Source of the DNA: Malacoraja senta
Lineage: Eukaryota
Length of the DNA: 64,000 bases
Assembly (NCBI GenBank): GCA_038087875.1
Contig: CM075988.1
Coordinates: 13,144,001 to 13,208,000 of the forward strand
Direction: 5' to 3'
The notes below the pieces were generated by a model. That model did not search any database and was not told where the DNA came from. It was given only the letters and a program-made list of their open reading frames with translations. Each line of letters begins with the position of its first letter. Within the stretch, counting starts at the first letter, position 1. The position numbers and the translations under genes were made by a program. Below are positions 2,247 through 51,292 of the stretch, one piece after another.

Positions 2247-2336
2247 CAGTTAATTTGCCTTTCCTGCAGCAGAGCAGTAACAAAATCACAGTCGTCACGA
2301 AGATTGGCACCGTTACAAATCGGACAGGGAAATGAC
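2247..2336 (-). CDS. Ig receptor gene B, transmembrane exon with TM-proximal Arg
   Basis: Acceptor ttgttgtcttacag, donor G|gtaaac, 90 nt, phase 1-1. GHFPVRFVTVPIFVTTVILLLLCCRKGKLT: hydrophobic helix followed by a basic stop-transfer segment, similar to the gene A TM. Confidence 0.75.
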
Positions 2337-2366
2337 CTGTAAGACAACAAAAAATTGGGTTTCTTA

Positions 2367-2546
2367 TAGGCCTGTCTCACTTACGCGATTTTTTGGATGA
2401 CTGACGGCACCCGTCATGTTGAAAATCCAGCGGCGACCAGAAAAAGATACGACTCTTCGCGCGACTACTCACGACCATACAGGCGTCACCCTGCGACATG
2501 TGGTGCCGGCAGTCGCCGAAAAATTCGTGTAAGTGGGACAGGCCTA
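2367..2546. mobile_element. PIF/Harbinger-type MITE
   Basis: TIR TAGGCCTGT(C/T)CCACTTAC...GTAAGTGGGACAGGCCTA, TTA on both flanks. Confidence 0.8.
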
Positions 2547-2999
2547 TTATGGTTTGCTTCAGTATAAAAGAACGCTGGCAAATATCAGTTAAATTGCCTT
2601 CCTTGTGTATTGATTCAGTGCAGTATCGATATCATGAATTGCAAATTCATCTCTCATTAATGCTGCTGTAGATTCTCCATGCCATTATTTGTGAGATAGG
2701 ATTGTACCAGCCCATCTAGGTTTAGATTTCTCATTACCATGTTTACCAAGGTACAGTGAAAAGCTTTGTTTTGGATGATATCAAAACAGATCAGATATGC
2801 TGCATATAAATACAATCACATCAAACTCAAGTACAATAAATAAAGCAAAGGAAAAGATGCAAAGTGCAGAATATAGTTCTCAGCATTGTAGCACATCAGT
2901 TTCATAGACAAAGCCCATGATAGTAAGTTTGCAGATGATATCAAGATTGCTGGGGTCACGGACTGTGAAGAAGGCTGCCAAAGTTTACATTATTTTGGC

Positions 3000-3515
3000 T
3001 GTTTTTCTGAGACAGAGTGAAGTGTAGATGGAATCAATAGTGGGAAGTCTGGTCTGTATGATGGTCTGGGCTACATCTACTATTCTCTGCAATTTCTTAT
3101 GACCTTGGCAGGACTGCTCCCAAACCAAGATGTGTTGCTTCACTTCATTGATGGTGATTTGGGCATGTTTTGCACCACACTTTCAGACATTGGTAACTAG
3201 CTCGCTCATCTTGCGAACATTGAGGGAGAGGTTATTGTCAATATGTATAGACTTCTGTCCATATTGTCCTAACACCATTTTACTAAGTACTTTATCTCCT
3301 TCCTTTCTTGTCATTGTTCATGATCCAGCCCACCACACTGGTGTCATCTACAAATTTGTGGATGGACTTCGAACTGAATTTGGCTGTACAGTCTTTAGTG
3401 TATCGGGAGTACAGTAAGGGACTGAGAAAGCATCCTTGCAGGGCACTGATATTGACAATTATTTTGGAGGAGATGTTGTCAGATTGTAGTCTAGGCATCA
3501 GAAAATCAAGACATT
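3000..3515 (-). mobile_element. Rex1/Babar LINE RT fragment
   Basis: Minus-strand ORF SALQGCFLSPLLYSRYTKDC...IHKFVDDTSVVGWI, homologous to the 61551-62030 RT. Confidence 0.8.
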
Positions 3516-3519
3516 GAGG

Positions 3520-3905
3520 AATTTTTGCGCTGTCAATAATTGTGGAAATCAGGGTAGCCGTGAGACACATTTATCCTACTTCAGAATTCCAAAAGTGAAG
3601 AGAAATGATGGTAGAGAGAGGCGACAGCTGAAGGGACAACAACAGCTAAAGTGGTTGGCGAACATTGGCTGTGCAGATATCAAGATTGAAAATATTGGGA
3701 ATTATCACGTTTGCTCACTGCATTTCATCAACAGTAAGGCATTATTTGTGTTTTTTCTTGATTCCTTTGGTATCCAAAAAGTTTCAGAAGTGATAAATCT
3801 GACTGTAAAATTTTATAATCACCCATGGTTCTCAAGTGGGTCTTTACATGCAAAAGGAAAACGCCCATTTAATGAAATGAAGCCATTTTTAATTATTTGG
3901 AATAT
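3520..3905 (+). mobile_element. THAP-domain transposon fragment (same family as 43255-45200)
   Basis: NFCAVNNCGN...FRIPK...KWLANI...VCSLHFIN is a C2CH THAP signature, followed by a gtaagg donor. Nucleotide similarity to 43405-43620. Confidence 0.75.
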
Positions 3906-4654
3906 TGAATGGAGATGCATGAATTGGGGTATAAAGTATTCATTAGATAACTGAATATAAAAGTAACCTAAACAAGTATTGAACTATAGGGCAATCTGAA
4001 TATTTGAGAGAGTTGTATTTTAACAATTGTAAAACAAACAAATACTTGGCACAAGCTTGGCACAAATGGAGTAGATACTAACAGTGAAAGAAACACAAAA
4101 TTAAAATCAGTGATGGTGTTCATACCTAACCAATTTGTTACATTAAAGCTGCAGATGCTGGAAATCTGAATTGAAACGGAAAATATTGCAGACTATCAGT
4201 TGAACAGGCAGAATTTGTGAGAAAAAGAAACATTAACTGTTTCTCTTACCAGAGATGTAAGCTGTTTTGCCGAGTGTCTCTACCTTTCTCTGCCTTTACT
4301 TTATGATCTTTTACCTTGGCTGCATAACTCCATATCCACGAGCAGTAGCTCTACTCAACAGCCAAAAGTCTGTAGCCTCCTTTTGCTCTGATATTTTATT
4401 TCATTCCTCACATGTTTAAATTATAATGTTTTATTTTTAATTGTCTACTATATATCGTGTTGTTACTTGCGAGCAAAGAACCAAGGCAAATTCCTTGTAT
4501 GTATATATACTTGGCTAATAAAATGTATTCAATTCAATCACAGACTACAGTTAACAAAAATATCGCAATCAACAGGGCTGAATTACTTCTCATTGTTCTT
4601 GGTTAAATCACACTACAATTAATTAGCCTGGTTTCCAATGGGGTGTGATTCAGA

Positions 4655-5010
4655 GAAACATAGAAACGTAGAAAATAGGTGCAGGAATAGGCCATTCAGC
4701 CCTTCGAGCCTGCACCGCCATTCAATATGATCATGGCTGATCATCCAACTCAGTATCCCTTACCTGCCTTCTCTCCATACCCCCTGATCCATTTAGCCAC
4801 AAGGGCCACATCTAACTCCCTCTTAAATATAGCCAATGAACAGGCCTCAACTACATTCTGTGGCAGAGAATTCCAGAGATTCACCACTCTCTGTGTAAAA
4901 AATGTTTTTCTTATCTCAGTCCTAAAAGATTTCCCCTTTATCCTTAAACTGTGACCCCTTGTTCTGGACTTCCCCAACATCGGGAACAATGTTCCTGCAT
5001 CTAGCCTGTC
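4655..5010 (-). mobile_element. CR1 LINE 3' fragment
   Basis: RTRGHSLRIKGKSFRTEIRKTFFTQRVVNLWNSLP, with a (gaaacata)n-type tail. Confidence 0.9.
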
Positions 5011-5133
5011 CAGGAAGATTGTTATTCTTATTAGTGTATATCGCTGTTTCTGAATGTGGTATGATATGCAAATAAAATTAATCTGCACACATTATAGAAA
5101 TTGAATTTATACAGAATTATATAATTATTTTTG

Positions 5134-5366
5134 CATAAATCTGTATTTGTGTTCCATCGCTCTTTTTACATGATGGAGTGAACACACCTGGTATCTTCAC
5201 CTTGAGTGTAGTTATAATAGAGTGACAAACAGAACATTTTGTTCAGTGATACTGTGCAGAGTGATTTGTTCATTTGGTAAGTAGCATCAGGCCCCTCCCG
5301 GTGATGTCTGATACCAGGAAACATGGAGCCAGGCATCCACACTTCCATATGTAAATGCACAACTTA
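5134..5366 (-). pseudogene. Decayed third V-exon copy downstream of the gene B V exon
   Basis: Frame-hopping translation SCAFTYGSVDAWLHVSWYQTSPG/PDATYQMNKSLC-TVSL...YNYT/VKIPGVFTP...DGTQIQIY. It has frameshifts, a deletion between the two extra Cys codons, and its donor GT is replaced by CA. Confidence 0.8.
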
Positions 5367-5779
5367 TCACAAACTAATTGGGTAAAAAGCAAAGCTCAAT
5401 ACTCAGCCCGGATGTGCTTCTTTGAAACAAGGAACTGCAGATCCTGTTTAACAATAGATACAGAGAGTTGGAGTAATTAACAGGTCAGGTAGCATCTCAG
5501 GGTCTGAAAAAGGGTCCCGATTGCAAATGTCCATGTTCTCCAGAGATGCTGCCTGACCCGCTGAGTTACTCAAACACTCTGTGTGTACTGAAGTACCTCT
5601 TATTCATTTCGACTGAAACAAAATTTGTTTCTTCATCTGATTTCTAATTGGTTGTGCTTGATATTTATACTAACCTATCTGTAAATGTCTTGGTACAAAT
5701 GGCAACGCGTTTAACATTATCAATTTAATAATCATAAAGTGCAAAAAGTGGAGTCCCCATACTTTCGCAAATACTTTAC

Positions 5780-6127
5780 CATAAACCTGTATTTGTGTTC
5801 CTTGGCCCTTTTCATAAATTGGAGGGAAGACATTTGGTACTTTCACCGCACAAGTGTAGTTGTAAACAGTGTGACCAAACGATACATTTTCAATCTTCAG
5901 TGAGACCGTACAGTGTTTGAAACCATCCCAGAGGGGGTGAGGAATGCAGAGCAAGTTGGTCATTTTGTAATTAACATCAGGCTCTCCTGGTGATGTCCGA
6001 TACCAGTAAACGCGGAGCCAGGCATTCACTGTTCCATTATAAATAAATGTACAGTTTAACGTGACGGACGCGCCTCTCCGCACACTGACCAGACGTGGCT
6101 GGGCCAACTCTGTGATGAGCGGAACTC
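5780..6127 (-). CDS. Ig receptor gene B, VJ-type V-set Ig exon (paralogue of 46440-46787)
   Basis: Acceptor ttttccatcag, donor G|gtaaag, 348 nt, open. GVPLITELAQPRLVSV...TLNC...YWYR...YTCAVKVPNVFPPIYEKGQGTQIQVY. 39 nt differences from the gene A V exon by hand alignment (~89% nt, ~74% aa identity). Confidence 0.88.
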
Positions 6128-6902
6128 CTGATGGAAAATAAATTAATTTGTTATTTTTACTTCTATTAATATTCCAACATATACTCGCTTTAAACTACGC
6201 TGAAATGGGGAACAAAAACAGAATGCTGGAAGGTCTCTGTGGGTCAAGCAGCATCTCTGGAGGCAAAAGGTATAATATGATGTTTCAAGTGAGACCTTGC
6301 AATAGGACTGAGGGGGGGAACAAAAGATAGCAAGTATATAACAGGATGGAGGAAGATGGGATAGGGCTAGTCAGAGATAGGTGGTACAATGGGCAAAGGG
6401 GTGGATGATGAGGAGATCAAACCAGATAGGGGAGGAGGTCTGAATTGAAGATTGGATTTCCATTGTATCAATTATTTTTCTTAAATAATATTTGCCTTTT
6501 TCAGATTTAATTGTAAATATAAATGTTATGTTGGTTTGTGATGCAATGTTCTGCCTGAATTTGTTTCATTTGCAGACACCATCAGTTGTATCCGAATGTT
6601 GCCATTATGATACTTGGCTGATAATAACTTCAAGTTGTGAAGTGACTGCTAAAATCATAAGCAATAGCAGATTAAGGCCAGTCAGCCCATCACTGCCATT
6701 CAATCATGGCTGATCTATCTCTCCCCTTCAACCCCTTTCTCGTGCCTTCTCCTTATAACGCCTGACACACATTTTAATCAAGAATCTGTCAATCTCCTCC
6801 TTAAAAATATCTACTTTTATTGTATCTTTTAATAAATGCCATAATTATTTTTGAAAAAATGTACATTGCAACTTAAAATATCTAATCATTGTACTATCTT
6901 GT

Positions 6903-6958
6903 AGCAGGAGTTGAATCCTTCTCTGGTTCTGAATGTCCCTGATGCTAATTAAACTCTC
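6903..6958 (-). pseudogene. Damaged leader-exon homologue of gene B (ATG>ATT, 3' half and donor not found)
   Basis: The minus strand reads gagagtttaa...cagggacattcagaaccagagaaggATTcaactcctg, versus gene A gagagtttaa...cagggacggtcagaaccaggcaaagATGcaactcctc. Homology stops after about 4 codons. Confidence 0.65.
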
Positions 6959-7075
6959 AGCCTATCCCCTGCTCCAAGAGAACTTTGCATGACTTTGCTG
7001 AAAAACATCACCTATTCCTTCTCTCCAGAGATGCTGCCTGTCCCACTGAGTTACTCCAGCATTTTGTGTCCATCT

Positions 7076-8647
7076 TGTGGCGCCACCCCGGTGGTCAGGC
7101 CACTTACGATGCGAACCCTTGGCAGTCGAGGGTAGGGTCACGTGACTGGGTAATGGCGGGAAGGAGTTGTCACGAGGTTATGGGGTGTGCCCTAGTATAA
7201 GTATTCAGCCCCGGGTCAGCCTTCCCCCATTCGCGTGTGTGTTGTTCTCTTTACTTCACCAATAATGATCTCTTTGATTCACTCACTTAATCGCCCGCCA
7301 TATTGGTGACCCCGACGATCCAAAACGGTCATTTTTGCAGCCAACGATGAACCTCAACAGCCCGAGGTTGCTGACAATCCAGAACACTGTCTCCCTGAAG
7401 TTGCCCGAGTTCTGGACATCGCAGCCCCAGGTGTGGTTCCAACAGGCCGAGGCCCAGTTCCACGTTTGACGCATCACGGCTGATGACACCCGGTACTACT
7501 ATGAGGTTGGTGCATTGGATCAGGAGATGGCCGGTCGCCTGGTCCCTTACCTACGCTCGCCGCCGGATCAGGACAAATACGAGGGCCTTAAAGCGCTGCT
7601 CTTGCGGATCTTTGGGCTCAGACACCGGGACCACGCAGCGCGGCTCCTGCACATGGGCAGCCTCAGCGATCGCAAACTGTCGGAGATGATGAGCGAGATG
7701 CTCACCCTAATGACGGTCATCGGCCCTGCCTACACTTTGACGACGCCTTCCTGGAACAGATGCCGGACGACATCCGCCTGTTGCTCGCCGGTGAGGATTT
7801 CGCAGACCCCCTACAGCTAGCGGAGTGTGCGAACGAGCTGTGGCAAGACAAGCAGCAGGGCGGTGGCTCGATAGATCAAGTATAGGCGGTGCCTTGGCGG
7901 TCCCAGAAACCAGGCCCTGCGTCCACCGGGAGTTCGGCCGCGCTGCCCGTCCAGAAAGACCCCGGTAAGGGGAAGCGCTGGGGCCCGCAGCCCGTCAGTG
8001 CCGCCCACCCTGCTCGTATCCAGGAAATGCCAGGACTGGCCGCCAGTAGTCGCTGCAGTAGTCGGCCTGAAACATCGCCTCTACATGTGGGATCAACACT
8101 CGGGATGATGGTTCCTGGTTGATACGGGCGCGGAGCTTAGCGTTTTACCCGACGGGGGTGGACACTCGTTCTGGCAAGCAGGGGCCTTCTCTGACTGCAG
8201 TCAATGGCAGCTCTATACGGACGTATGGAGTTTGCACAATCCCGCTCATCTTTGGCCTCTGCTATTTCACCTGGACCTTTACGGTGGCCGACGTTTCCCA
8301 GCCATTGCTGAGCACAGATTTCCTCCGGGCGCAATCCCTGTTGGTGGATGTGCCTCGTTCGTCTATCCTTTCGGTTTTGTGCCTCCGGTTCTGGGGGGGG
8401 GGGGGTGGTCCTGTGGCGCCACCCGGTGGTTAGGCCACTTACTATGTGAACACTCTGCAGTCGGGGGCAGAGTCACATGACTGGGTAATGGCGGGAAGGA
8501 GTTGTCACGAGGTTTAGGGGTGTGCCCTAGTATATGTATTCAGCCCCGGGTCAGCCTTCCCCCATTCGCGTGTGTGGTGTTCTCTTTACTTCAGCAATAA
8601 AGATCTATTTGATTTACCATGCATGGCTTGCTTATTCGCCCGCCATA
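7076..8647 (+). mobile_element. Internally deleted Gypsy LTR retrotransposon (LTR-PBS-gag-protease-PPT-LTR)
   Basis: LTRs 7076-7302 and 8412-8647 (TG...CCATA), ATCT TSD on both sides, PBS TGGTGACCCCGAC, gag SLKLPEFWTSQPQVWFQQAEAQF, protease WFLVDTGAELSVLP, G-tract PPT. No RT or IN. Nested in a Penelope hairpin that has an ACTTTGCATGA TSD (6982-6992, 8691-8701). Confidence 0.92.
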
Positions 8648-14668: not shown

Positions 14669-16264
14669 CAGGGCCGGATTTACGTATAAGCTTGACAAGC
14701 TTAAGCTTAGGGCCTCGAGATCTAGGGGGGCCTCAGCAGGGCCGGATCATAGGTTGAAGCCTAGGGCCTCAAAATCTAGGGGGCCTCCGGCCAAGGTGTT
14801 TTTTTTCCCAGAGTGAAAAAAATCCAGAGAAAAAAAAATTGGAGCGCTATCAGCGTTTCCACTTTGACGGAAATTACCCGAAATTCTGGTTCCGGCCGCT
14901 GGAGGTTTTGGAGAAAAAAATTGCCACCATCCGCGCCTGCACAGTTGGGGGAAGCCGGTGACGCAGTAGCGACGCAAAATGATGCTGTCTCTCCGCGCGT
15001 GCGCAGTATGCCCTGGCGGGTTCAGATCTCAATTTGCACTCCACACAATCACCTCGATGCCTCGTGTCTACTCCAGGTAAGTAGTGGAATATTGCGTTGC
15101 GGGAGCGCCCGTTTCTCCAGCCCGGGGGGCGGCTGCGGTGTCTGTGGCGTGGTGTCAGAGCCTCGCTGAGTGGGAGGGAGAGAGAGGGGGAGAGAGGGGG
15201 AGGGAGGGAGAGAGAGGGGGGATGTGAGAGGGGGAAAGGGGGGGTTGAGACAGAGGAGAGAGAGAGGGAGGGGAGGGGGGAGAGAGAGAGGGGGGAGGGG
15301 GAGAGACAGGGGAAGTGGGGAAGAGGGGGGGGAGAGAGGTGGAGGGAGAGGGAGGGGGAAAGAAGAGGGGGAGAGGGAAAGGGAGATTATCTTTAGTGAG
15401 ATTGCAAAATTAAGGTAGGTTTTAGAGCATTTATATTTTCTCCTCCATATGAATAATATCAAACAATTGGAACTGCTTTCTTTTCCTTGATAACAATACT
15501 GAAAAATATGAATTCCATAGTTTGCGACTTTCATTTTGCATCATTTTTAATGTGCACACACTAACACAGTTGAACAGTAACAGGCAATCAAATCAACACA
15601 CAAAACATTTTCTAAAAAAAGGTTTTATTTACAGCAAAAACTTACAGTATTTTACTTGCAGTGTTTGCATGCTCTTTTATAACAATTTTACATAACATTT
15701 TACAGTACAACTTGATTATTAAAACAAGGACAGCTTCAATTCTTGATTTAAAAAATGTATACAACAATGACCCCAATCATCCCATTCCAACCACTAATTA
15801 CTCTTGACAAGCGGGCTCTGGACCCCGGCCGCAAGGGTCTTTCAGCTTCGCGCTTGTGATATGCGCTGCGTGTACTTATTTCACATAAAATGTTTGTAAT
15901 CCTGCCATGCCACCCCCCTTTTTGAAAAGCTTCATATGGGCCTGGTATATAATATTTTTGATACTGTCATAGGCCTTTATACATATGCTGTCACAACGCA
16001 ATGTAGTCTCTAAACAACACTTCAGTAATTTTCCTTGCCCTCCATTTCAGAATAATAATGTTTTAAGCTGATAACTTGACACTAGCACTGGCAATAAATG
16101 AAAAGCGCAGCTTTCCAGCCCTTATCTCATTGGCCATGCTCGGCTGCACATCAGTGTCAATCTGATGGACTCTTCCATCTTCCTCTCGTCGTGGGGGTGG
16201 GGGATTGGGAGGGGCCTCACAAGTGAAATAGCCTAGGGCCTCTCTTCATCTAAATCCAGCCCTG
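14669..16264. mobile_element. Non-autonomous hAT transposon
   Basis: TIR CAGGGCCGGATTTA / TAAATCCAGCCCTG, perfect 8-bp TSD CTCACATG. Contains a CpG-rich block and an AG-rich tract (15170-15385). Confidence 0.88.
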
Positions 16265-26842: not shown

Positions 26843-26844
26843 TT

Positions 26845-31140: not shown

Positions 31141-31229
31141 TGATACATTATGCAACTTTCCTCATTAATTGATCATTATAGGTTTATGCATATTATTTGA
31201 ATATAACGGTTTGAGAGCAGGATGTCTTA

Positions 31230-32108
31230 AGGGCCTGGCCACTTGGGTGATTTGTCAGTGGACTGCCGGCGACTTTCAAGTTCGCGACACTCGCTGAAAA
31301 AACGGGAACTGGAACGGCGAGTGNNNNNNNNNNNNNNNNNNNNNNNNNNNNNNNNNNNNNNNNNNNNNNNNNNNNNNNNNNNNNNNNNNNNNNNNNNNNN
31401 NNNNNNNNNNNNNNNNNNNNNNNNNNNNNNNNNNNNNNNNNNNNNNNNNNNNNNNNNNNNNNNNNNNNNNNNNNNNNNNNNNNNNNNNNNNNNNNNNNNN
31501 NNNNNNNNNNNNNNNNNNNNNNNNNNNNNNNNNNNNNNNNNNNNNNNNNNNNNNNNNNNNNNNNNNNNNNNNNNCACGGTGCAAAGCCAAGGTGATACAG
31601 CCAGGAAGGTTAAGACGGCTAGCACAGTGGGGGGAAGGAGTGGAGACACTTTAAAGAAGCCAGACAATTTTGAATAAGCCAGAGATACACAGTTGTGAAG
31701 TTTGGCGAGCATTTAACATTACCGGTTGGTTCTCCTTGGTTCTGAAAACTCATGCTTACGTTTTTTTATCCCCCAATGAGCCAATGAAAATGCCCGGTCA
31801 GCAAAGGCGATTAACTAAAACTACCTACGACTAGCTTGACTACCTATAACTACATGGCGACCCCAATACAACTGCACCTACGACTACAAAAGTATCGATT
31901 TTCTCCATGGCGACTAATTTTTGGTCGCAGAAATGTTTTCAACATGTTGAAAAATTTGTGGCGACCATACTGAGGCCGCGACTAGTTCCCAGAATGCGGG
32001 AACTCCTCATGACCATGAAGGAGACTCACCAGAGACCACCAGCAAACATGTGGCGAGCGCAGAGTCCCCTGCACTCGCGTAAAAGGTCGCCTAAGTGGGA
32101 CAGGCCCT
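31230..32108. mobile_element. PIF/Harbinger-type MITE spanning an N gap
   Basis: AGGGCCTGGCCACTT...AAGTGGGACAGGCCCT with TTA on both flanks. Confidence 0.75.
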
Positions 32109-32593
32109 TTAGAGAGAGAATTTCCATAATTTTGTTGAAGGCAGTATTTGAACCATTCGTCCATTCTTTTCTTAAATTCATGGTGTCATCACATCCAATA
32201 CATTCACTGTGTCAATAAGTTAATACATTTCATCTACAGAGAACCAATCCCAATTAAGTAAAACACAATGTGATGGAATAACTCAACGGGTCAGGCAGCA
32301 ACTCTGAGGTAATGGACAAGCGACGTTTCCGGTTGCGAGCTTCCACTTACGTGGCCTCTGTGAACATTACATCCTGAATCCATGGCCCCAGTTGTAACTC
32401 AATTGTAACCATGTAAGAATGAGATGCTTCTCATCAGGCACACACCCTGCCTGAGATCATCGACCACCAACTCCGAAACTGTCTGAGGCGACTCAAGGTG
32501 ACCCAAAATCAAACCTATTTCCATATTGGCACTGGATGTAGGAATCATCACTGTTGCATTTGTAAGCGTCTGATTTAGGTAGAATTATTTCCA

Positions 32594-38500: not shown

Positions 38501-39863
38501 TAATAATTGAGACAGAGGATTGTTATCCTTTTAACATAGGAGCGATCCTTTTCTCCCCGATAAAACTGAACAATACAATATATAAGAAGAATCCAATAGT
38601 TCATAGTACAATACGAATTTGGAAACAAATAAAATTAACTCTCAAATTAAGAAATCTATCGCTCCTCTCTCCAATAGTTAATAATCCGTCATTTAAACCA
38701 TCTATTATTGATAAAACGTTTACCCATTGGGAAAGAATAGGAATCAAAACGCTTGGAGACATGTACGAAATGGGAAACCTTTTATCATTTCAACAACTAC
38801 AATTAAAATACAACCTGAAAAGTAATCAATATTTCAAATACCTTCAAATCCGAGATTACCTGAAAAAACACACAAGAATATCAAACCTTAACCTCAGATC
38901 TATTAGATGAAGGAATGAACAGAAATGCGGAAACAAGTAATTTAATATCATATTTGTATAACATCATTTTAAACACAGAAATACCATCGACAGAAGCAAT
39001 TAGAAGGGATTGAGAACAAGAATTAGCTATAAAAATTCCGAAAATCAAATGGGAAAAATACTTGCTATATGTACATAAATGCTCGATTAATGTAAGACAC
39101 AACTTAATTCAATTTAAAATTTTACATAGATTATATTACTCAAAAACCAAACTGAATACAATTTTCCAAATGTTTCTCCCATCTGTGATAAATGCCTATC
39201 TCAAAACGCTACTATATACACTCTTTTGTCTCTTGCATAAAACTTCAAAAATTCTGGAATGACATTTTTGGAATTTTTACAAAACTATTTAAAATAAAAT
39301 TGAAGCCCAATGCAGAACTGATTCTCTTCGGATCAATGGAAGACGGATGTAAGCTGACTTCATTTCAAAAATGTTTACTTAATTATGGCTTAATAACAGA
39401 AAAAAAATTAGACTTAAATTCTGGAAAAATGCACCCACACTGACGCTCAAAATGTGGATCTCAAACATGTCGGAAATGTTACACCTTGAAGATATGAGAT
39501 TCCTCCTATCAGGCAAATAAGACCAATTCTTAAAGATTTGGTCTCCATTTATCGACTTATTACAAGCATGTGGTGCAACACAACCTTAGAAATTAATTGT
39601 GTCATAACCGGCTGAAGGGTGGGTAAATATACGAAGGAGGCATATCCCTTTCATTTTCTCTCTTTTCTTTCTTTTTTTTTCTTTTCTCTTTCTCTCTCCT
39701 CTATTCTCTCTCTTTCTGCTTATTTCACATCACCTTCTTTTTTTTCTTTTTCGAGCTATATTATATTCTCTATCTTTATATTTCTTGCTTTTCTTACTCT
39801 TTTTTTTCTACTATTAATATAAAATTTGTTTAAAAAATAAAAAATTAAAAAAATTAAAATTAA
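32594..39863 (+). mobile_element. Full-length L1-clade LINE (ORF1 34198-~35400; ORF2 ~36344-39530, disrupted)
   Basis: 13-bp TSD AGAATTATTTCCA (32581, 39864). ORF1 LDLEARSRRQNLRIVG; APE WNIRG/LQETH; RT DAEKAFD, RQGCALSP, YADD. Frameshifts, a deletion near 37371-37468, and an inverted L2-like tail inserted in ORF1 at ~35055-35275. Confidence 0.95.
32838..34156 (+). mobile_element. 5'-truncated L1 inserted into the 5' end of the full-length L1
   Basis: ORF2 3' end, 3' UTR and A-rich tail, flanked by 106-bp direct repeats (32732-32837, 34157-34262). Confidence 0.88.
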
Positions 39864-40139
39864 AGAATTATTTCCAATGATAGCTCTTACACGGAGAGCA
39901 ATGTCTTCTTCTGCTTGTGCGTATGTCCAGTTGATTTTGATACCAATTTTCTGAGGCATTAAAATAAAGACAAATGAGGAATTTATTTATTCATGCCTTG
40001 AACAACCTTCTCAAATCCAACATTCTTAAGAAACATTTTGCCATTACAAATAGTCCCAGGCCTATATAAGGAGGTTTTTGGCTATTTGTTTCTCAAATAA
40101 AACTCAATACCGGTGAGTTTACTAAATTGGCATAATTTC

Positions 40140-41235
40140 TAGAGTCGTGGTGTCATACAGCATGGAAACAGGCCGTTCACCTCAACTGGCCCATGCCGAC
40201 CAAGATGCCCCATCTATACTGGTCCCCCCTACCCATGTTTGGCCCATATCTCTCTAAACTTTTTCAACCATTTACCTGTCCAAATGTCTTTCAAATACTG
40301 TTGTCGTACCTGCTTCAACTACCTCCTCTGGCAGCTTCTTCCAGAAACCCACTACCCTGTGTGTGAATAAGTTGCCTCAGGTTCCTATTAAATCTTTTCT
40401 CCATCACCTTATACATATGTTCTCTGGTTCTTGATTCCCCTACTGTGGGTAAAAGTCCTTGTCCATTCACCCTATCTATTCCTCTCATGATTGTATATAC
40501 CTCAATCAGATCATCCATCATCCTCATACGCTCCAAGGAATAAATTTCCAGCCTCTCCCTCTAGCTGAATACCTCAAGTCCCGGAAACATTCTCGTAAAT
40601 CTTCTCTGAACTCCTTCCAGTTTTATATTTGACCAGCAGATGGTGCAAGAACTACACTAGGATTCAGTACATAAATCAAAGTGCAGATTACTGCAGCAAC
40701 TGTAGCAATTTTGTTTCTGAAAGCAAGAAAACTACAAATATGGTGCCAAGTAAAAGTGATTATCCGACACACTTGGGAATTTGAAAGTTGGTTTATTGTC
40801 AAATTTTCCAGAATATTGAATGTTATTCCTATTCACGCCCTACACATTTTCAATTCATATGAAAAAATATTATATTATATTGCTGTGCTATATTTTCTAT
40901 GTTATATAATATAAAAAAACAAATTCAACACTGGAGCTATTGTATAAATAGACAATAGACAATGTGTTCAAGGGTAGGCCATTCGGCCCTTTGAGCCAGC
41001 ACTGCCATTCATTGTGATCATGGCTGATCATCCCCAATCAGTACCCCGTTCCTGCCTTCTCCCCATATCCCCTGACTCCGCTATGTTTAGGAGCCCTATC
41101 TAGCTCTCTCTTGAAAGTATCCAGAGAACCGGCCTCCACCGCCCTCTGAGGCAGAGAATTCCACAGACTCACACCTCTCTGTGTGAAAAAGTGTTTCCTC
41201 GTCTCTGTTCTAAATGGCTTACCCCTCATTCTTAA
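40140..41235 (-). mobile_element. Two CR1 3' fragments (40140-40620, 40945-41235)
   Basis: GESRTREH...FNRNLR and KPFRTETRKHFFTQRGVSLWNSLP on the minus strand. Confidence 0.85.
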
Positions 41236-43254: not shown

Positions 43255-45200
43255 AGGGAGGTTTCACGGCAGTCGGGTCACGACCCCATGACCCGTACTG
43301 TTGCTACGCTACGCCACGCCAAGTGGAGTACACGCGATGAACTGCAGGCAGGCACTTACCATTGTTTCCAGCGTTGCGGGCCCGTTAAAACCCGCCGAAA
43401 TGGTCCATTTTTGCGCTGTAAATAATTATGGAAATCGGGATAAGCGTGGGAGACATTTAGCCAACTTCAGAATTCAAAAAGTGAGGAGAAATGACGGTAG
43501 ATAGAAGCGAGAGCTGAAGGGACAACAACAGCTTGTCGAACATTGGCCGTTTGCTCACTGCATTTCATCAACTAAGGCATTATTTGTGTTTTTTCTTGAT
43601 TCCTTTGGCATCTAAAAAGTTTCAGAAGGGATAATCGCCCCTGGTTCTCGTGGGTTTTTACATACAAAAATAAAACGCCTCTGAAGCAAAATTTACAACC
43701 AGATGTACCACTTCTGAGACTTTTTAGATACCAAAGAAATAAAAGCAAAAACAAATAATGCCTTACCGTTAATGAAATGCAGCGAAAAAACGCGTTAAAT
43801 CCCTATATTTTAAATTCCGATATCTGCACAGCCAATATTCGCCAAGCACTTTAGCTGCTGTTGTCCCTTCAGCTCTCGCTTCTCTTTACCTTCATTTCGC
43901 TTCACTTTTCGAATTCTGAAGTTGGGTACATGTCTCTCACACTTACTAGGTATGTTACAAAACTTACCTTCAGTCGCGCTGTAATTCTGCCACTGGCCGT
44001 GTGCGCGATTTTGGCGCCTTTAAGGGGGGGGCGGGGTTAAAACGCGGGTTTCTCCCTTGTCCTGGAAATATTTTGTTGGAGTACAAAACTTCGCTGACAA
44101 AATCGTTCCTACCGGCGATTTGTGAATTTTAAAAAAAAATTAAATCGTCAATGTCAGCGCTAGAGTCATTTTAAAAGCAGCTCCTGAAGCGTCAACGCCG
44201 ATAACGGGGACGGATTTCACACAATGGACAGGTAAACAAAAGTGCTTTCTTTAAATGTATAAAAGTGCTTCTTAAGAAGCCTTTAATTCACATTTTGTCA
44301 TGCGACACGGTGATTTTATTCCCCGAATTAACGGCAGTATTTTTCATGCCAATACGGGGTTAAATTCACCGCAAATGAACGTTCCAAAAGATCGCGTTCC
44401 AGTAATTCTCACTCGCAAGATGAATTAAATCCCCATTAATTTACAGGTATTAAACATTCAATTCCTTCCATTTGGCCTGTAAATTCATGAAAATTAGATT
44501 TAAAAATTATGTTATATTGTGAATTATTGTGTGAATGTTATTTGGACACTTAGGCTATTTAAAAATGTTAATCTATTCTTAAGAAATTGATAGATGTTTA
44601 GATCTAGTAATTGAATTTTGTAATTAGCTACAATTAGGTAACTAACTAATTATATGCTTTACTTTCATGTCTTCGAAGTAAGATTGTTTCATATTTGTTT
44701 CAGAATGCTTCAATCTATAATACCTGAAAATTTCTTTCAGTTACCATAATTTTTAAGAAAGTTATGGGCTTTTAACTGTCCTCGATCACAGCTTTTGTGT
44801 TAAGTCAATGGAAAAGCAATAGGGAACTAGATGCTAATTTCTGAGTATGATAATGGCCATAACTTTTTTAATACTGAAGATATGAAAGTGAATTAAGTGT
44901 CAAATTAAACTTCTTTTTATGCTTTATCTGATGGGATAAATTGCAGACTTTATTTTTTAAATCTCAAAATTTTGTAACATTGCTACACTTACCCCGTCTT
45001 CCACAATTTTTTACAGCGAAAAAAGTCAACATTTTGGCGGTTTTTAACAGGTAGGAATGTACGCGTTTCTTGTATTAATAACATATACTGGAAGTGACGG
45101 ATGTCCTCCAGATGGATTGAGCGGCTCCGAGCGTCAAGCCCTATGACCCGGTGACCCAGCGTCAAGCCCTATGACCCGGTGACCTTACGTGCAACCCCCT
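43255..45200. mobile_element. ISL2EU-like (PIF/Harbinger-related) non-autonomous transposon with two inverted THAP exon remnants
   Basis: Termini AGGGAGGTTTCACG / CGTGCAACCCCCT, AT dinucleotide flanks, subterminal atgacccg repeats. THAP remnants at ~43405-43600 (+) and ~43745-43945 (-). Confidence 0.7.
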
Positions 45201-45248
45201 ATAGGTTCAACAAGGGCGGGAAAAAACATTTTCCAGTGGTGCCCACTG

Positions 45249-45490
45249 CAGGAAGTGAGAGTTAAACTTTATCGAAATGCTTCAATGGGTGAAAGAAACT
45301 CATTTGAAGTAAGACAACCTTGCTGCAGCGAATTAGAAAAGGCACTGAAGTCACTCTGACGGCGTATTGACTGGGGCAGTTGTTTTAGATGCTGTGACAT
45401 TGTTTTTGATTCAGTTCTCTTCAACAAAGGCAGAGATATTAATCTAGGGAAAGTGAAAACTTCCTTCGGCTCGAACGTAACTTCCTCCGC
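45249..45490 (+). promoter_or_regulatory. Putative haematopoietic promoter motifs of gene A (ETS, IRF/ISRE-like, PU.1-like)
   Basis: CAGGAAGTG at 45249, GGAAAGTGAAA at 45448, and GAGGAAGTT on the minus strand at 45479-45487, 160-400 bp upstream of the leader ATG. Motif match only. Confidence 0.4.
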
Positions 45491-45645
45491 TCAGTACACC
45501 CTCTGGCATTTCACAGTCTGTGCTATTCTCCGTCTGAGATGCGAGTTCACAGCGGACGGATCATCCTCACTTGACATTTGCACGATTGGAGCTGGCCGCG
45601 GACGGAGAGTTTAACACTTCCAGGGACGGTCAGAACCAGGCAAAG

Positions 45646-45694
45646 ATGCAACTCCTCCTGAAGCTGCTTTTCCTCCTGCATGCAGGAACACAAG
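45646..45694 (+). CDS. Ig receptor gene A exon 1, signal peptide (MQLLLKLLFLLHAGTQ|G)
   Basis: ATG at 45646 opens 16 hydrophobic codons plus 1 nt, ending AAG|GCAAGT (GC donor, phase 1). It joins in frame to the phase-1 V exon at 46440, giving AGTQG-VPLIT. A homologous sequence lies upstream of the gene B V exon. Confidence 0.75.
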
Positions 45695-46439
45695 GCAAGT
45701 TATGTTGATCGGACAATCTGTGGACCAAAGAGCCGTGATGGGGATCATCATTATGTGGCATGTTGCATCGATAGGTAGTTCAGGAGCGAGTCCGTTATTA
45801 AAACAGCAAGTCGATGAATATTTCTGCTCAAAGGCCGAGAAACCCTTCAAAAGATTTAGTCTCCATTTAATCTATATTTTTAATGTTGGAATACAAGTTT
45901 TGCGTCTTCATTGCCTGCGATTGCCTGCAATGATTCAATTAGTTAAAACATTTGAGATATAATTCGGTCACTACAACTCCATCAGAGAGCACAAAGCAAG
46001 AATCTTACGAAGGTGTAGAAACGAGGAACAGCAGATTCTGGTTTGCAAGAGAAGACACAGAGGGCTGGAGCAACTCAGCGGGTCAGGCAGCATCCTTGGA
46101 GAACAGGAATAGGTGGCCTTTCGGGTCGGGACCCTTTTGCAGACTTTGAAAAGTCATCTCATCCATGTGCTCCAGAGATGCTTCCTGACCCGCCGAGTTA
46201 CTCCAGCCCTTTGTGTCTTTTCTAGCGTCCAAAGATCACGGTGCCACCAGCCACCGAATCTGATGAGAGAAGGCATTTGCAACCATCATGGAAGCGAGAA
46301 TCGTTTGAAAACGTCAGATTTGAATACGTTTCTTTTAAATATTGTTTCCGTTAGAAAACCCCTTGTTCGGTGTGTAAAGTGGATGTTTATTGAATTACTA
46401 ACGGGAGTATAATTGACAAATGTGTTTATTTTCCACCAG

Positions 46440-46787
46440 GAGTTCCGCTAATCACAAATTTGACCCAGCCACGTCTGGTCAAGGTGTGGAGAGGCGAGTC
46501 CGTCACGTTAAACTGTACATTTACTTATAATAGAAGTGTGAATGCCTGGTTCCGCATTTCATGGCTTCGGACATCACCTGGAGAGCCTGGTGTTACTTAC
46601 AACACGAACAACTCGCTCTGCATTCCTCACCCCCTCTGGGATGGTTTCAAAATCTGTACGGTATCACTGAAGATTGAAAATGTATCGGTTGTTCACTCTG
46701 ATTACAACTACATTTGTGCGGTGAATGTACCAAGTGTCTTCCCTCCAATTCATAAAATGGGCCAAGGAACACGAATACAGGTTTATG
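46440..46787 (+). CDS. Ig receptor gene A exon 2, VJ-type V-set Ig domain
   Basis: Acceptor ttttccaccag, donor G|gtaaag, 348 nt, phase 1-1, open. Motifs: TLNC (B strand), SWLR (C strand), SLKIENV (E), YNYICAV (F), GQGTRIQV (J-like G). Extra Cys pair (LCIP, ICTV). Confidence 0.92.
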
Positions 46788-47695
46788 GTAAAGTATTTGT
46801 AATACTATGATGATCTCCAGTCTCTGCACTTTATGTTTATGAAATCGATAATGTTAAACGCAGTGACATTTGAACCAAGCCATTTACAGATACTTTAACA
46901 GAAATAATAGCAAGCTGACCCAATTAGAAATAAGATGAAATGAACACATTTTGTTTCAACCTAAATGAATAAGGCATACTTAAGACGACACAAAGGGCTG
47001 GAGCAATTCAATGGGTCAGGCAGCATCCCTGGAGAACATGGATAGGTGACATATCGGGTCTAGATCTTCTTCAGACCATGTTCCCCTGAGATGCGGACTG
47101 ACCCGCTGAGTTACTCCAGCACTCTGTGTTCTTTTGTAAACCAAAATCTGCAGTTCCGTGTTTCACAGAGGTACTTCAAGGTTGGTGTTTCCAGCTTTTT
47201 TTTGTAAAACACGGCTTGTGATGTCTCATTTGATCTTAAATCGTATATGAAAACCAACAGTGACAATATTGCTCACCAACAGTGACAATATTGAGAAAAG
47301 AGCAGAGCAGGGTGCTGAGGGGTTGGTCTCCTTGGTTTGCAACAACTAAGTCTGAGGAGCAATTAAATTGCAGTGCATTAAATTATGTGAGGTCTCAACA
47401 CACAAACCAGAAAGGAGTTGGATCTCGTTGCCTGGAGTAACTTGGAAGCATAGATGTACAGTATGATAGCTGGTAGAAGAATTGGGTTGATGTTGTGAAC
47501 AAACAAATTCACTCAATCAGTGGCAGTGACTGGAACTCATCACCTGAATGGGTAAAAGAAGTAGAAATCTTCACCAAATTTCATGTACCCGAATGAGCAC
47601 TTGAAGTGCATCACCTGCAGGGCTTTGAACTAGAGAAGTGAGAGTAAGTTAAAAGTATGTTTAAGAGCAGCATGTATTCAATAGATCTCCTACAC

Positions 47696-47905
47696 CAGGC
47701 GTTCCCAACCTTTTTCGTCCTGTTTACCCCTGGCAACTTTAATAGCACATATCAATGTTATTTCACTTATTTATGAACAACTAATGATGAACAGATAATG
47801 ATGCCAGAAACAAACACAGTCAGTCAATGAAAAAACATATGTACAAATCCAGAATCAACAAATTTACCCCCTGGGGGTAAATTTATCCCAGGTTGGGAAC
47901 TCTTG
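47696..47905. mobile_element. hAT (Charlie-like) MITE in intron 2 of gene A
   Basis: TIR CAGGCGTTCCCAACCT / AGGTTGGGAACTCTTG, 8-bp TSD TCCTACAC. Confidence 0.88.
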
Positions 47906-48285
47906 TCCTACACCATAAATTTCTACAATGATTATCATTAACGCAAGCTACCACTAATGTCTCACTGAAATGTTTTACTGTGCATTACTGTGCATTACGA
48001 GTATTGTCAATACTAACCAAAAGACTACAGCATGTGAGTCTGTGTGATATACATAATCTCATTTAGCCAGGACCATGGAGTAATATTATAATGGTCCAGC
48101 ATTATTTGATCCTTGATGCTTCTCAGCTAAAGAAGGGCTCTATTATTATGATTCTACATCATTAACTTAAAATATTCTCTATGAAAATAGAGCAGAATTT
48201 TGGACAATTTACTCTGTCAGTAAGTTTCACTATCATTGAAATGTGTGATATATAGTTTAATACTTTATGCTTTATCTTCTCTCAG

Positions 48286-48576
48286 ATCTTCCAGAAATGT
48301 ATATACGGAGTGATACTTTGGTTGCTGGTCATGAATCCACTCTAATCTGCTCTGGCAGGAGATTGTACGGCAAGGATATCTCCTTTACATGGACATGCAT
48401 TTCTACAAATATCACTGCACCAACTTTTGAAACAGTCAGGAATGGCACACTAGTTGCCACCAGTCATTACAAGATTGTCCCAAGAGTGGAAGACAATGGG
48501 ACTGTTTGCAGTTGTCAGATAAATCATTCCACTTTTGGACGACCAGCTGTAAATACAATCAAACTAAATATTATGT
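48286..48576 (+). CDS. Ig receptor gene A exon 3, C2/CD80-like Ig domain
   Basis: Acceptor cttctctcag, donor T|gtaagt, 291 nt, phase 1-1, open. LVAGHESTLIC...FTW...TSHYKIVPRVEDNGTVCSCQINH...KLNIM resembles domain 2 of Siglec/nectin-type receptors. Confidence 0.9.
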
Positions 48577-50472
48577 GTAAGTATCATCTTTGACTTTTGA
48601 AGTGGTATTCACTGTATTGCTAATCTTTGAATTCTTATTGTATGCACATTATTGTGTTATAACTGATATGTACTGTATATCACCATCTATACCAGTGTAA
48701 CAGAATATCTTCTGCATCTGCTTTACCTGCTCATTGACCCATTCATTCCATCAGTTTTATCACTTACATTTTCTCTCATTTATATTGTTCTTGGTTTCTT
48801 CTATTTTGCCTTTCTCTCTTGTCCTGTTACTCAGACCCAAAGTTTCACCTTTCTCTACTGCTTTCAATCAATCTGCCCCAAATACTCTATCTTCTTACTA
48901 TGATGATTCTTTCCCAGATTTGAATCATTCTCAGATAAGTTTGTAGCCTCCTTATAGATATCTCTTGGTAATCCTGTGTGTGTCTCCCCATCTCCACTAA
49001 GGCAATCTTTGATGTACATCTGATGTTGATGCCTCCATTTATGGTGTCCTTGAGACCTCGTATGGTGTCCTTGAGACCTCGGTATAAGGCGCCCGTAAAT
49101 AAAATCCATTATTATTATTATTATTATTATTTAAGCAGTAAGCCCATCCTCTTTTCTTCCCACCCAACTAAAGGCTAATCCTGCTCAACTCAAACCCACT
49201 AAAGGCTAATCCTTCTAACCTTCTCAGTCAGAGTTTGCCACACTTACAGGGTGGATCAATATTCATCATCCCTCTCCTTTTCACATTCATATTCTGTTCT
49301 ATTCATTTTAGAATTGGACTTTTGCCATCTAAGCCCTCATTGTGCGTGTGTGCATTGATAAAAGTATTTCAAGTATAACTAATTGCTCCTTCTCCAAACT
49401 TCTTGGCCAAGGACTCACAGAGGTTCTATGTTCACTTTCACCAAAACTCACTTTCTTCTGTCCTTATCCATCTCCTGCAACACTTCACCCTTTTGCATCT
49501 CCTTCATATCTCTCCATTAAATTCTCTTTCTCTATCAAAAAAAGTTGATTCTTCTCTCCCAGCTTTTGCAATGGTATCTTCTTCTCTCTATTTTAAATGC
49601 CCATCTTATGTAGCTGTGGTATCTTCTTGTAGCAATGGTATCTTCTTCTCTCTATTTTAAATGCCCGTCTTATGTAGCTGTCTTAACCCTTACGTGTTTG
49701 AGTTCATAGCCCTCTGTCCTGCATTAACTTTGTTTAACTCCTCTATTCATGGCCACACCAACAATATTCCCTTTTCATGTGTGGGAAGAAACGGCAGATG
49801 TAGATTTAAACTGAAGATAGACACAAAATGCTGAAGTAACTCAGCGGGAGAAGGGTCTCAACCCAAAAAGTCACCCATTCCTTCTCTCCAGAGATGCTGC
49901 CTGTCCCGCTGAGTTACTCTAGCATTTTGTGTCTACCTTCCCTTCACAGGGGGCCCTACTACTCTCACCATATGCAGGGGTATCTGTGATCATTTGTGGT
50001 AACCAAAGAAATCACTTACAACCGCAAAACCACCTGTGTTCCGACAGGTGAAGAAAATCACTTAAGAATTATATTAGTGGCTTCACTCTTCAAACTGTTA
50101 ACATTTGGAACTCCATTTGCCACGTTTACCAAACACTTCATCTCTCTACTACCAGCTGTATAACCCTCGAACAATTCTACATTTCTCCAGTCGTAATGTC
50201 GAACTTTCATCATGCAAATGGTTCATTAAGCTCTACCATTCATTCCCCTTTCCTCTCCGCATCAATCCCTCACTCTCCACAGACAAGAACAAGCTTAGCT
50301 TTTTGTTACGTATTCGATTCTTTCCAACTTGGCTTCAGTAGCAAACCCTTGAGAATGATTAGCTCAGAAGTGCAAAGTTTGATTGTAAATAGCTGTTCTG
50401 TGTATACTTGCACATTAATTCTTTTCACATTGCTTTAATCTACAATGAAGTGTACGTTATCTTTACCGTTAG

Positions 50473-50790
50473 ATGGACCACAAGATCTATTAATAACATA
50501 CAGGTTGAAAGCAGTGGATACTTATCGACTGATCGATGATAGCATCATCTTTGTTGCTGCTGATTCATTCCTGGAACTGAATTGTCGTGTAGATAGTAAT
50601 CCGGTCTCCACTGTAAGCTGGACCAAGGCCATGGAGATTCATAATGTAACGTTTCAAACTGGAGTCGGGTTCAACAGTTCAAAAGAATGGACACGTTTCC
50701 AGCATAAAGATGAAGGAATGTATTGGTGCATGGCAAAAAACGGCTACGGCTGGAGAAACAGAAGTATCTCGATAAACACAAAACGGAAAG
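50473..50790 (+). CDS. Ig receptor gene A exon 4, I/C2-set Ig domain
   Basis: Acceptor ctttaccgttag, donor G|gtaaat, 318 nt, phase 1-1, open. YGPQ...LELNCRVDSNPVSTVSW...DEGMYWCMAKNGYG is a typical I-set pattern. Confidence 0.9.
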
Positions 50791-51193
50791 GTAAATAGAC
50801 ATGTAATTATACATGTGCATAGCTAACAATGTTTATTGAGGTAGAATCATTCTTAGCAAATAAGACCTCAGCTTAATTAGTTCAATGTCTTTTTTCTTGA
50901 TCTTAGTGATTGATCAATTGTAATATTTTATTCATTTTACAAATCATATATAGTAAAGACTCTTTAGTGCTGTCATTTTCAAACACTTTGATTTTATAGT
51001 TTTTCCATTGTAGATAAAAAAAATTAAACATGAGAGTGCTGCAGTTTTGTTTATAACTGGCAGTGTATCTCTTTGAAAGAAATATGTACCCTGCTGTCAA
51101 ATAAAGTTAAACGATTGCTGCGTATTTTTTTATAATTTTTATTTTCTTGTTGAAACATTAAATTTAGTTGACATCTTGAATTTTCTTTCACAG

Positions 51194-51292
51194 ATTATCC
51201 TTTTCTTTATGCTCTGGTCCTGGTCCCCCTAACTACTGCCATCATTTTGGCAATAATATATTTTTGCCTGTTCTGAAATAGGCAACGGAAAG
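51194..51292 (+). CDS. Ig receptor gene A exon 5, transmembrane exon with in-frame TGA at 51274-51276
   Basis: Acceptor ttttctttcacag, donor G|gtaaaa, 99 nt, phase 1-1. Translates DYPFLYALVLVPLTTAIILAIIYFCLF*NRQRK. The spliced CDS from 45646 to the stop is 1089 nt (362 aa). Confidence 0.85.

Follow-up and report, generated by a model that had tools for sequence, protein, structure and literature searches.

A predicted tail-less receptor gene and an inverted gene fragment of a SIRP-like elasmobranch family in the skate Malacoraja senta

Introduction

In families of paired immune receptors, gene conversion commonly keeps the ectodomains of activating and inhibitory members alike. The SIRP set comprises the inhibitory SIRP-alpha, whose tail carries the motifs TYADL and SEYASV, the activating SIRP-beta and the tail-less SIRP-gamma. 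Siglecs are recognised by a V domain with a sialic-acid-binding Arg on the F strand, an intrasheet B-E bond in place of the B-F cysteine pair and an interdomain bond, followed by C2-set domains. An Arg at the outer edge of the transmembrane (TM) segment is known from NKp46, NKp30 and GPVI, which are partners of FcR-gamma/CD3-zeta, and the FG loop of CD28 and CTLA-4 reads MYPPPY. Here we analyse 64,000 nucleotides of the skate Malacoraja senta (assembly GCA_038087875.1, contig CM075988.1, positions 13,144,001 to 13,208,000; hereafter the window), which carry two putative immunoglobulin (Ig) receptor genes, gene A on the plus strand and gene B on the minus strand. An earlier reading made from the letters alone (the sequence-only reading) had taken them for a head-to-head pair of Ig receptors with a shared V domain but unlike architectures, a candidate family of paired receptors.

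Elasmobranch UrIg and UrIg2 and the teleost NITRs resemble the genes described here in having a germline-joined VJ exon followed by C-type domains and in being restricted to, or best kept in, cartilaginous fish; weak matches in our V-domain searches include proteins that resemble teleost NITRs as judged by eye. Unlike UrIg and UrIg2, the family described here has a membrane segment with either a tail bearing immunoreceptor tyrosine-based inhibitory motifs (ITIM) or an Arg within the membrane segment (Arg-TM). The amino-terminal domains of UrIg2 form homodimers and its C2-C3 structure resembles IgG Fc, and ITIM, SIRP and Siglec are nowhere mentioned in the available text of that paper (Flajnik et al. 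2025, PMC12227049). A 2024 survey of the chondrichthyan CD28 family likewise makes no mention of any three-domain family (PMC11599192), and in the literature searched we found no description of it.

We conclude that the locus is part of a family of type-I membrane receptors that do not rearrange, occur across elasmobranchs and are built from a VJ-type V domain, a C1-like domain, an Ig_3/I-set domain and a membrane segment. Gene A is one real, tail-less copy of this shark-and-ray immune receptor gene, and gene B is an inverted fragment that may or may not remain a gene. For this explanation as a whole we estimate a probability of about 0.68.

Structure of gene A

Gene A has five predicted exons, with every junction in phase 1 and a predicted product of 362 aa (a slash outside brackets marks a splice site here and below):

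45646-45694, plus strand: leader exon (MQLLLKLLFLLHAGTQ + 1 nt); the intron after it is of GC-AG type, donor AAG/GCAAGT
46440-46787, plus strand: V exon, VJ-type V-set domain with four invariant Cys, a GQGT J-like motif and PP in the FG loop
48286-48576, plus strand: domain 2 exon, C1-like (Pfam C1-set 23.7 bits, cut-off 21)
50473-50790, plus strand: domain 3 exon, Ig_3/I-set (Pfam Ig_3 E=1.5e-9, I-set E=2.4e-6)
51194-51292, plus strand: TM exon, uncharged membrane segment followed by TGA at 51274-51276

The window is colinear with a contig of Leucoraja erinacea (90-92% identity) and with contigs of Rhinoraja longicauda (87-90%), and proteins of Amblyraja radiata match it at 82-92%. The leader exon, including its GC donor, shares 95-98% identity with the exons annotated as first in the genes of Leucoraja and Rhinoraja. 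Exons, length and uncharged membrane segment had all been given correctly by the sequence-only reading, which had however written the architecture as leader-V-C2-I-TM; domain 2 scores as a C1-set and stays below the cut-off of 21 as a C2-set_2 domain (15.8 bits). Its weak matches are B7-H6, CD33, SIRP-gamma and the second domain of PVR/nectin-2, and it is 90% identical to the Leucoraja protein. The V domain matches Pfam V-set with E=9e-10 (2e-9 for that of gene B), and the matches of domain 3 in the PDB are Ig domains of neurofascin, contactin and MAG.

Directly 3' of the TM exon lies a 1-kb G+C-rich block (51435-52484; 55% against a background of 40%, CpG observed/expected 0.95) that is missing at the Leucoraja and Rhinoraja loci and may be a CpG-island-like insertion.

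Distribution and forms of the family

Searching 1.84 billion representatives with the gene A V domain gave six close matches, all of them elasmobranch proteins, with the source names Siglec-12/13, MAG-like, sialoadhesin-like or uncharacterised; a further search gave 13 models in sharks, rays and skates. Gene A exons match the elasmobranch family models at 72-90% identity, and the orthologues of gene A in three other skates are NCBI models auto-named "Siglec-12/13". The family had been thought unannotated, but NCBI holds models in at least 12 elasmobranchs under the names Siglec-12/13/14, MAG-like and sialoadhesin-like. The orthologues of gene A and the ITIM and Arg-TM relatives are thus already in the databases under misleading names; gene B itself was found in no annotation. 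The sequence-only reading had also considered that the locus might be orthologous to a known non-immune adhesion gene, and the family is not such an orthologue.

Full-length forms of about 480-520 aa add a cytoplasmic tail to the architecture of gene A. This tail carries an ITSM-like DTIYAVV (ITSM, tyrosine-based switch motif of immunoreceptors), an ITIM EEVSYADIVI and an ITIM-like SEYS(V/A)V. All three show no or almost no variation across 11 species, and their tyrosines are Y397, Y429 and Y478. Transcript-sized Logan contigs encode the complete ITIM form. Most likely, the tail of this core family gene would signal by recruiting SH2 phosphatases.

Other members share the three-domain ectodomain and have a conserved Arg in the membrane segment, with a short tail or none. 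They are of two kinds. In the first, found in sawshark and catshark (P0045, P0046), the membrane segment reads ..F(I/V)(I/V)RSI(A/S)VAA(Y/F)ILIL.. and the tail is essentially absent. In the second, from sawshark, bamboo sharks, catshark and stingray (P0004, P0047, P0049, P0057), FPVR, FLLR or FTHR is followed by ..(V/M)PIFV......L.W.. and by a short tail ending in (T/S)E(F/L) or SKL. Under the labels of this analysis, the ITIM forms are P0002, P0005, P0034-P0044 and P0053, and the Arg-TM forms with this ectodomain P0004, P0045-P0047, P0049 and P0057; P0048 likewise carries the Arg. No Arg-TM exon was found within the A-type loci of other skates. The proposal of a paired-receptor family is therefore right at the level of the family, where ITIM forms and Arg-TM forms occur with the same three-domain ectodomain. 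For genes A and B as a pair it is at most a proposal.

Relationship to described receptors

In an alignment of 18 V domains from the family, the canonical Cys25 and Cys92 and Trp41 are invariant or nearly so. There is an extra, invariant pair of cysteines, Cys60 and Cys72, as well as an invariant PP in the FG loop, (V/I)(Y/F)PP, just before the J-like GxGT/GQGT (window 46730-46787). The F-strand Cys is followed by A, E, V, I, T or L, and by Arg in 0 of the 18. By sequence, the best solved relatives of the gene A V domain are Ig lambda V domains, and in a family profile the V and C1-like domains align with whole Ig light chains, whereas the best match to Siglec-8 spans domains 2-3 only. A structural model of the gene B V domain shows a regular V-domain fold with a pLDDT (predicted local distance difference test) of 91.8; fold searches with it gave generic V-set matches only (antibodies, T cell receptor, PD-1, MPZ, PILRA and Siglec-15, with Z 10-12) and did not discriminate between families.

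Among named families, the SIRPs appear closest by sequence. A profile alignment (hhalign) to SIRP-beta-1 reaches a probability of 94.6% (E=6.5e-8, 293 colinear columns), the ITIM form of Rhinoraja matches pig SIRP over V and C1 (BLASTP 4e-8), and the sawshark Arg-TM member P0004 finds SIRP-alpha at 1e-10 and SIRP-beta at 1e-8. Both families have three Ig domains, with a VJ-type V domain first and a C1-set domain second, and both include members with ITIM tails, members with a basic TM residue and tail-less members with an uncharged membrane segment; the xxYADI and SEYSxV of the family are similar to the tail motifs of SIRP-alpha. The differences are an identity of only about 23-26%, the extra invariant cysteine pair and FG-loop PP of the family V domain, and a basic TM residue that is an Arg near the outer edge in the family and a Lys in SIRP-beta. 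The third domain, moreover, is Ig_3/I-set and not C1. We regard the family as distantly SIRP-like and do not file it as SIRP.

With CD33-related Siglecs such as Siglec-5 and Siglec-14, the family shares a tail with an ITIM and an ITIM-like motif, an activating counterpart with Arg-TM, ectodomains kept similar by gene conversion and a weak similarity of the membrane-proximal domains. It differs from them in a V domain that lacks the sialic-acid Arg and the Siglec disulfide pattern and has a J-like motif, and in its C1-like domain 2. Gene B as first read looks like NKp30 (NCR3), with a single VJ-type V domain, a short stalk, an outer-edge Arg in the TM segment and a short tail. Yet its V domain is a recent copy of that of a three-domain receptor and it has no start codon at the homologous site, and the suggested relation to NKp30 found no specific sequence link, NKp30 being absent among the best 60 of 808 solved matches to the V domain. 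The likeness to CD28 and CTLA-4, a VJ-type V domain with FG-loop prolines, is limited to one loop, and the CD28 family consists of single-V receptors.

A tandem pair with a tail-less upstream copy

At the right end of the window a further element of the locus begins:

63397-64000, plus strand: start of a second tandem unit, leading to an ITIM-bearing copy past the window (91% identity to 39864-40475)

Since this segment repeats the start of the duplication unit, the second copy begins just past the right end of the window; the same segment is also colinear with sequence upstream of copy 2 on the Leucoraja contig. There, two colinear leader-to-TM copies lie inside one annotated gene, and in Rhinoraja a 380-aa and a 491-aa gene lie side by side. 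In the tandem pair of the present locus, gene A takes the upstream, tail-less position and its ITIM-bearing partner lies downstream; it is this tandem copy, and not gene B as had been proposed, that is the natural partner of gene A. No ITIM or subfamily tail exon was found downstream of gene A up to 64000, which is expected and uninformative because the equivalent tail exons of Rhinoraja lie 15.7-27 kb beyond the TM exon. The second assembly gap of the window (58861-59060, 200 N) falls in the stretch from the gene A TM exon to where the next tandem unit starts, and from the Rhinoraja and Leucoraja layouts no family exon would be expected in it.

The loss of the tail can be followed in the TM exon of gene A, which ends ..IIYFCLF-TGA-AAT-AGG-CAA-CGG-AAA-G/GTAAAA, so that the former stop-transfer codons (NRQRK) and the donor are still present after the TGA. 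In the ITIM copies of Leucoraja and Rhinoraja, which run on into the tail, the codon at this position is TGC (Cys). The upstream copy of Leucoraja has CGA at the stop position and TAA three codons later, and that of Rhinoraja is open there and spliced to a short last exon that has no conserved counterpart in the window. In Amblyraja radiata, model XP_032905438 terminates at the same residue as gene A (...IIYFCLF), which indicates that the stop is real and goes back at least to the split from Amblyraja. Hence the upstream copy is without a signalling tail in four skates, reached by three routes (two stop codons and an alternative last exon), and its ectodomain exons are open in all four. As the gene A stop lies 16-18 nt before the donor, nonsense-mediated decay would not be expected under the usual 50-nt rule. 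By analogy with SIRP-gamma, we infer that gene A is a working tail-less receptor.

Gene B and the inverted duplication

The elements of gene B and of the duplication around it are:

6903-6958, minus strand: leader-exon/5' untranslated region remnant, ATT for ATG, remainder lost (57 nt, 79% to 45605-45659)
5780-6127, minus strand: V exon, open frame, splice sites intact
5419-6161, minus strand: inverted duplicated segment around the V exon, matching 46406-47169 (blastn 765 nt, 82%; inverted-repeat pair I1)
5132-5367, minus strand: pseudo-V, relic of an A-type V that carries two frameshifts and has lost an internal part (up to 74% to Rhinoraja V over 27 aa)
2247-2336, minus strand: TM exon, ..GHFPVR-FVTVPIFVTTVILLLLCC-RKGK, Arg at the outer edge

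The two V exons, 46440-46787 (+) in gene A and 6127-5780 (-) in gene B, are each 348 nt long, share 88.8% of their nucleotides and 74% of their amino acids (tblastn E ~1e-55), and have in common the acceptor TTTTCCAyCAG/GAGTTC and the donor TTTATG/GTAAAG. Together with the 82% match that extends into the flanks, this bears out what had been seen in the letters, namely two V exons of equal length on opposite strands with homologous flanking introns. Leader remnant and V exon are 775 nt apart (780 nt in gene A), and the homology of the remnant stops 11 nt past the ATT. Leader remnant and V exon of gene B do derive, as had been proposed, from an inverted duplication of the 5' part of an A-type gene; the TM exons of genes A and B show no homology at the DNA level above shuffled controls.

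The TM exon of gene B has the second kind of Arg-TM, with homologues in sawshark P0004, stingray P0047, catshark P0049 and bamboo shark P0057, and 15 of its 17 core residues are identical to those of the stingray. It has a strong acceptor and a G/GTAAAC donor, is in phase with the V exon, and its Arg stands second in the best hydrophobic stretch of 19 residues. A search by tblastn with the gene A exon translations and eight family proteins revealed no C1-like or Ig_3/I exon between V and TM, and no subfamily tail exon was found on the minus strand below 2247 (1-2246); read-through of the TM-exon donor would end the protein 11 residues later. Other leader exons were sought with both GT and GC donors; a single weak candidate came up, at 10556-10493 and 4.4 kb away. 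Among 5.8 billion sequences no protein of 64-203 aa shares words with the gene B V domain. Over 1400-7300, four runs, none of them recorded as RNA, gave zero contig depth at the V exon and very high depth only on repeats, which is poor evidence as the runs are possibly of DNA or of other species. Of the description of gene B as a V-TM gene with an Arg at the membrane edge, the two exons and their phase therefore hold, while the homologous leader has neither ATG nor signal peptide and no transcript or protein was found. Most likely, gene B is a chimera that has fallen silent or is decaying, and does not function as a V-TM receptor.

At 3514-3954 (+), an open reading frame (ORF) shows a THAP-like zinc-finger pattern (C..C...C..H); copies related to it lie at 43407-43940. 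The ORF belongs to a repeat present in the V-to-TM intron of gene B and in the region upstream of gene A. This repeat explains inverted-repeat pair I2, which is not related to the receptor duplication.

Evolution of the V exons

Compared with the V exons of Leucoraja and Rhinoraja, the ratio of non-synonymous to synonymous rates (dN/dS) of gene A is 1.6-3.1 in the V domain and 0.5-1.05 in domains 2 and 3, values that rest on few synonymous sites (p=0.08-0.11, single pairs). Changes unique to gene A amount to 10/351 in the exon and 2/306 in the flanks (p=0.04), and of those scored against each of the four sequences compared, 9 of 9 lie at codon positions 1-2. The V exon of gene A thus appears to change faster than its introns, as expected for a domain facing ligands or pathogens.

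The V domain of gene B groups within the A-type V domains of skates (clade support 96/96) and not with the V domains of the Arg-TM subfamily; in the V tree, gene B, the Rhinoraja pair and the group of gene A and Leucoraja form a trichotomy. Substitutions unique to gene B reach 16% and 24% in the downstream and the upstream intron, respectively, but only 4% in the exon (exon 14/351 against flanks 55/306, p=3e-9). The synonymous distance of gene B to the other V exons is 0.11-0.13, about that between Leucoraja and Rhinoraja, while the intron distance is three times larger. About 2 synonymous and 11-12 non-synonymous changes fall on the gene B branch, which does not have the look of long purifying selection. 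Conversion from A to B was also sought in shared derived sites, where only 1 site groups A with B, so that the donor would not have been the present-day gene A.

From these observations we propose the following history. In skates, a 5' part comprising leader, V, C1-like, Ig_3/I and TM exons was duplicated in tandem, with gene A as the upstream copy, a 362-aa receptor that ends after its uncharged TM segment and may serve as a non-signalling or decoy-type partner comparable to SIRP-gamma. Gene B would go back to an old inverted duplication of a leader and V part, placed upstream of the Arg-TM exon of a second, ancient subfamily of activating type. Later, roughly when Rhinoraja split off, an A-type V would have replaced its V exon alone through gene conversion, and the exon would have drifted or diversified afterwards.

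Alternative interpretations

Some points weigh against the interpretation favoured here. The splicing of genes A and B is predicted from the sequence, the dN/dS values carry the limits just given, and part of the SIRP-likeness lies at a level that general similarity within the Ig superfamily can produce. Gene B could use a different upstream leader, both its V exon and its TM exon have an open frame and good splice sites, and by a rough estimate an intact V exon would have about a 1-in-10 chance under neutral drift since the inferred conversion. Copy 1 might also not be a separate tail-less protein, given the exon joining in the Leucoraja model XP_055516779 (490 aa). This model combines leader, V, C1-like and Ig_3/I of copy 1 with TM and tail of copy 2 and bypasses the TM exon that bears the in-frame TAA (Leucoraja contig 10001-55765); it may be either a real cassette-type splice or a prediction artefact.

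If it is real, gene A would be an alternative ectodomain cassette, whose transcripts skip its own TM exon and the leader-to-I exons of copy 2 and join the TM and ITIM exons of copy 2, so that two different V-C1-I ectodomains would share one inhibitory tail. XP_055516779 is indeed identical in V, C1-like and Ig_3/I to copy 1 and in TM and tail to copy 2, one transcript-like Logan contig (P0056) mixes copy-1-like and copy-2-like parts, and the ectodomain exons of copy 1 are open in four species despite the stop. Gene prediction, however, tends to bypass in-frame stops, and assemblers make chimeras from paralogues that are 95-98% identical. Separate tail-less proteins are present at NCBI in Amblyraja and Rhinoraja, and in every species the TM exon of copy 1 has kept its splice sites perfect and its membrane segment open. 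Moreover, the stops of two lineages lie within three codons just past the membrane segment, which fits a terminal coding exon, and the gene A stop is placed such that nonsense-mediated decay would not be expected. We therefore hold the cassette to be doubtful. Far less likely still, indeed very improbable, is that the genes are true Siglecs that bind sialic acids, as their database names imply. Siglec-8, CD33, Siglec-5 and Siglec-10 do occur among the weak matches, for domains 2-3, and a tail with an ITIM and an ITIM-like motif is the established pattern of CD33-related Siglecs, gene A itself being without a tail. Against this, the V domains keep the canonical B-F cysteine pair and Trp41 and do not show the intrasheet B-E pattern, none of the 18 has an Arg after the F-strand Cys, the G strand carries a J-like GxGT, the best sequence and fold matches of V are antigen-receptor V domains, and domain 2 is a C1-set.

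Gene B, for its part, could be a working gene for an NKp30-like activating receptor. Such a receptor would take its signal peptide from an upstream exon that has escaped recognition and would have a single V domain, a stalk of five residues, an Arg-TM segment and a short tail, and its Arg would pair with an Asp-bearing adaptor of the FcR-gamma/CD3-zeta type that carries an immunoreceptor tyrosine-based activation motif; together with tail-less gene A and the ITIM copy this would make a three-way set like SIRP-beta, SIRP-gamma and SIRP-alpha. For a live gene speak the V and TM exons, open, in phase and with strong splice sites, the TM motif FPVR..VPIFV..LLL..CC.RKG that is kept from sharks to stingray, the Arg at position 2 of the best hydrophobic 19-mer, which is typical of FcR-gamma/CD3-zeta partners, and an exon far better preserved than its flanks (p=3e-9). 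On the other side, the homologous leader has lost both ATG and hydrophobic core, leaving the one weak alternative at 10556-10493; all other members with this type of TM segment retain the C1-like and Ig_3/I domains; the predicted stalk has just five residues; and a subfamily-type tail exon was not found in 1-2246. To this come the missing short protein in 5.8 billion sequences, the zero V-exon depth in four runs (poor evidence, as said) and a substitution pattern (~2 synonymous, 11-12 non-synonymous) that gives no sign of purifying selection. With the leader dead and no product found, weighed against the intact exons, a live V-TM(Arg) gene is rather unlikely, as is the NKp30-like receptor as spelled out above, and that gene B is a live exon-shuffled receptor, with a V domain of inhibitory type joined to an ancient Arg-bearing TM exon of activating type, is unlikely too. 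Were it live, this skate would have a three-way set of ITIM-bearing, tail-less and V-only activating receptors that is independent of mammalian SIRP-alpha, SIRP-gamma and SIRP-beta or NKp30.

Other features of the window

The window has a G+C content of 40.5% and two assembly gaps (31324-31574 and 58861-59060), and the majority of its long ORFs are transposon fragments. The following elements lie in the spacer between the two genes:

31324-31574: assembly gap, within a ~1.9-kb intergenic insertion (30218-32154) that is absent in Leucoraja
34198-35139: ORF1-like frame of a long interspersed nuclear element (LINE), 313 aa
36685-37371: LINE endonuclease-like frame
37468-38910: LINE reverse-transcriptase-like frame, 480 aa

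The first gap sits in the 39-kb spacer that separates gene A from gene B and touches no exon or intron of either. Its flanks, 29209-30217 and 32155-32593, are colinear with the gap-free Leucoraja contig at 4677-5689 and 5686-6124, which supports order and orientation across the gap. The three frames belong to a 7.3-kb LINE insertion with long open frames (window 32594-39863), which is probably recent because it is missing from the colinear Leucoraja sequence. Purine/pyrimidine-rich simple-sequence tracts at 15049-15534 and 59981-60619 give rise to spurious Pro/Ser/Leu-rich or Gly/Arg/Glu-rich ORFs on both strands. An Rfam search of the window returned no match.

Implications

The analysis brings to light a conserved inhibitory receptor of sharks, rays and skates that is systematically misnamed Siglec or MAG in public annotation, and which by its V and C1-like domains appears to be a non-rearranging, antigen-receptor-like and SIRP-like molecule. 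Its value lies in the correction of a name and in a testable family rather than in a new principle. The occurrence of ITIM, Arg-TM and tail-less forms, together with a fast-changing V domain and probable gene conversion, indicates that the pattern of paired receptors existed already in cartilaginous fish. The repeated loss of the tail in four skates suggests that a decoy-type receptor is useful, for example against a pathogen that exploits the inhibitory partner.

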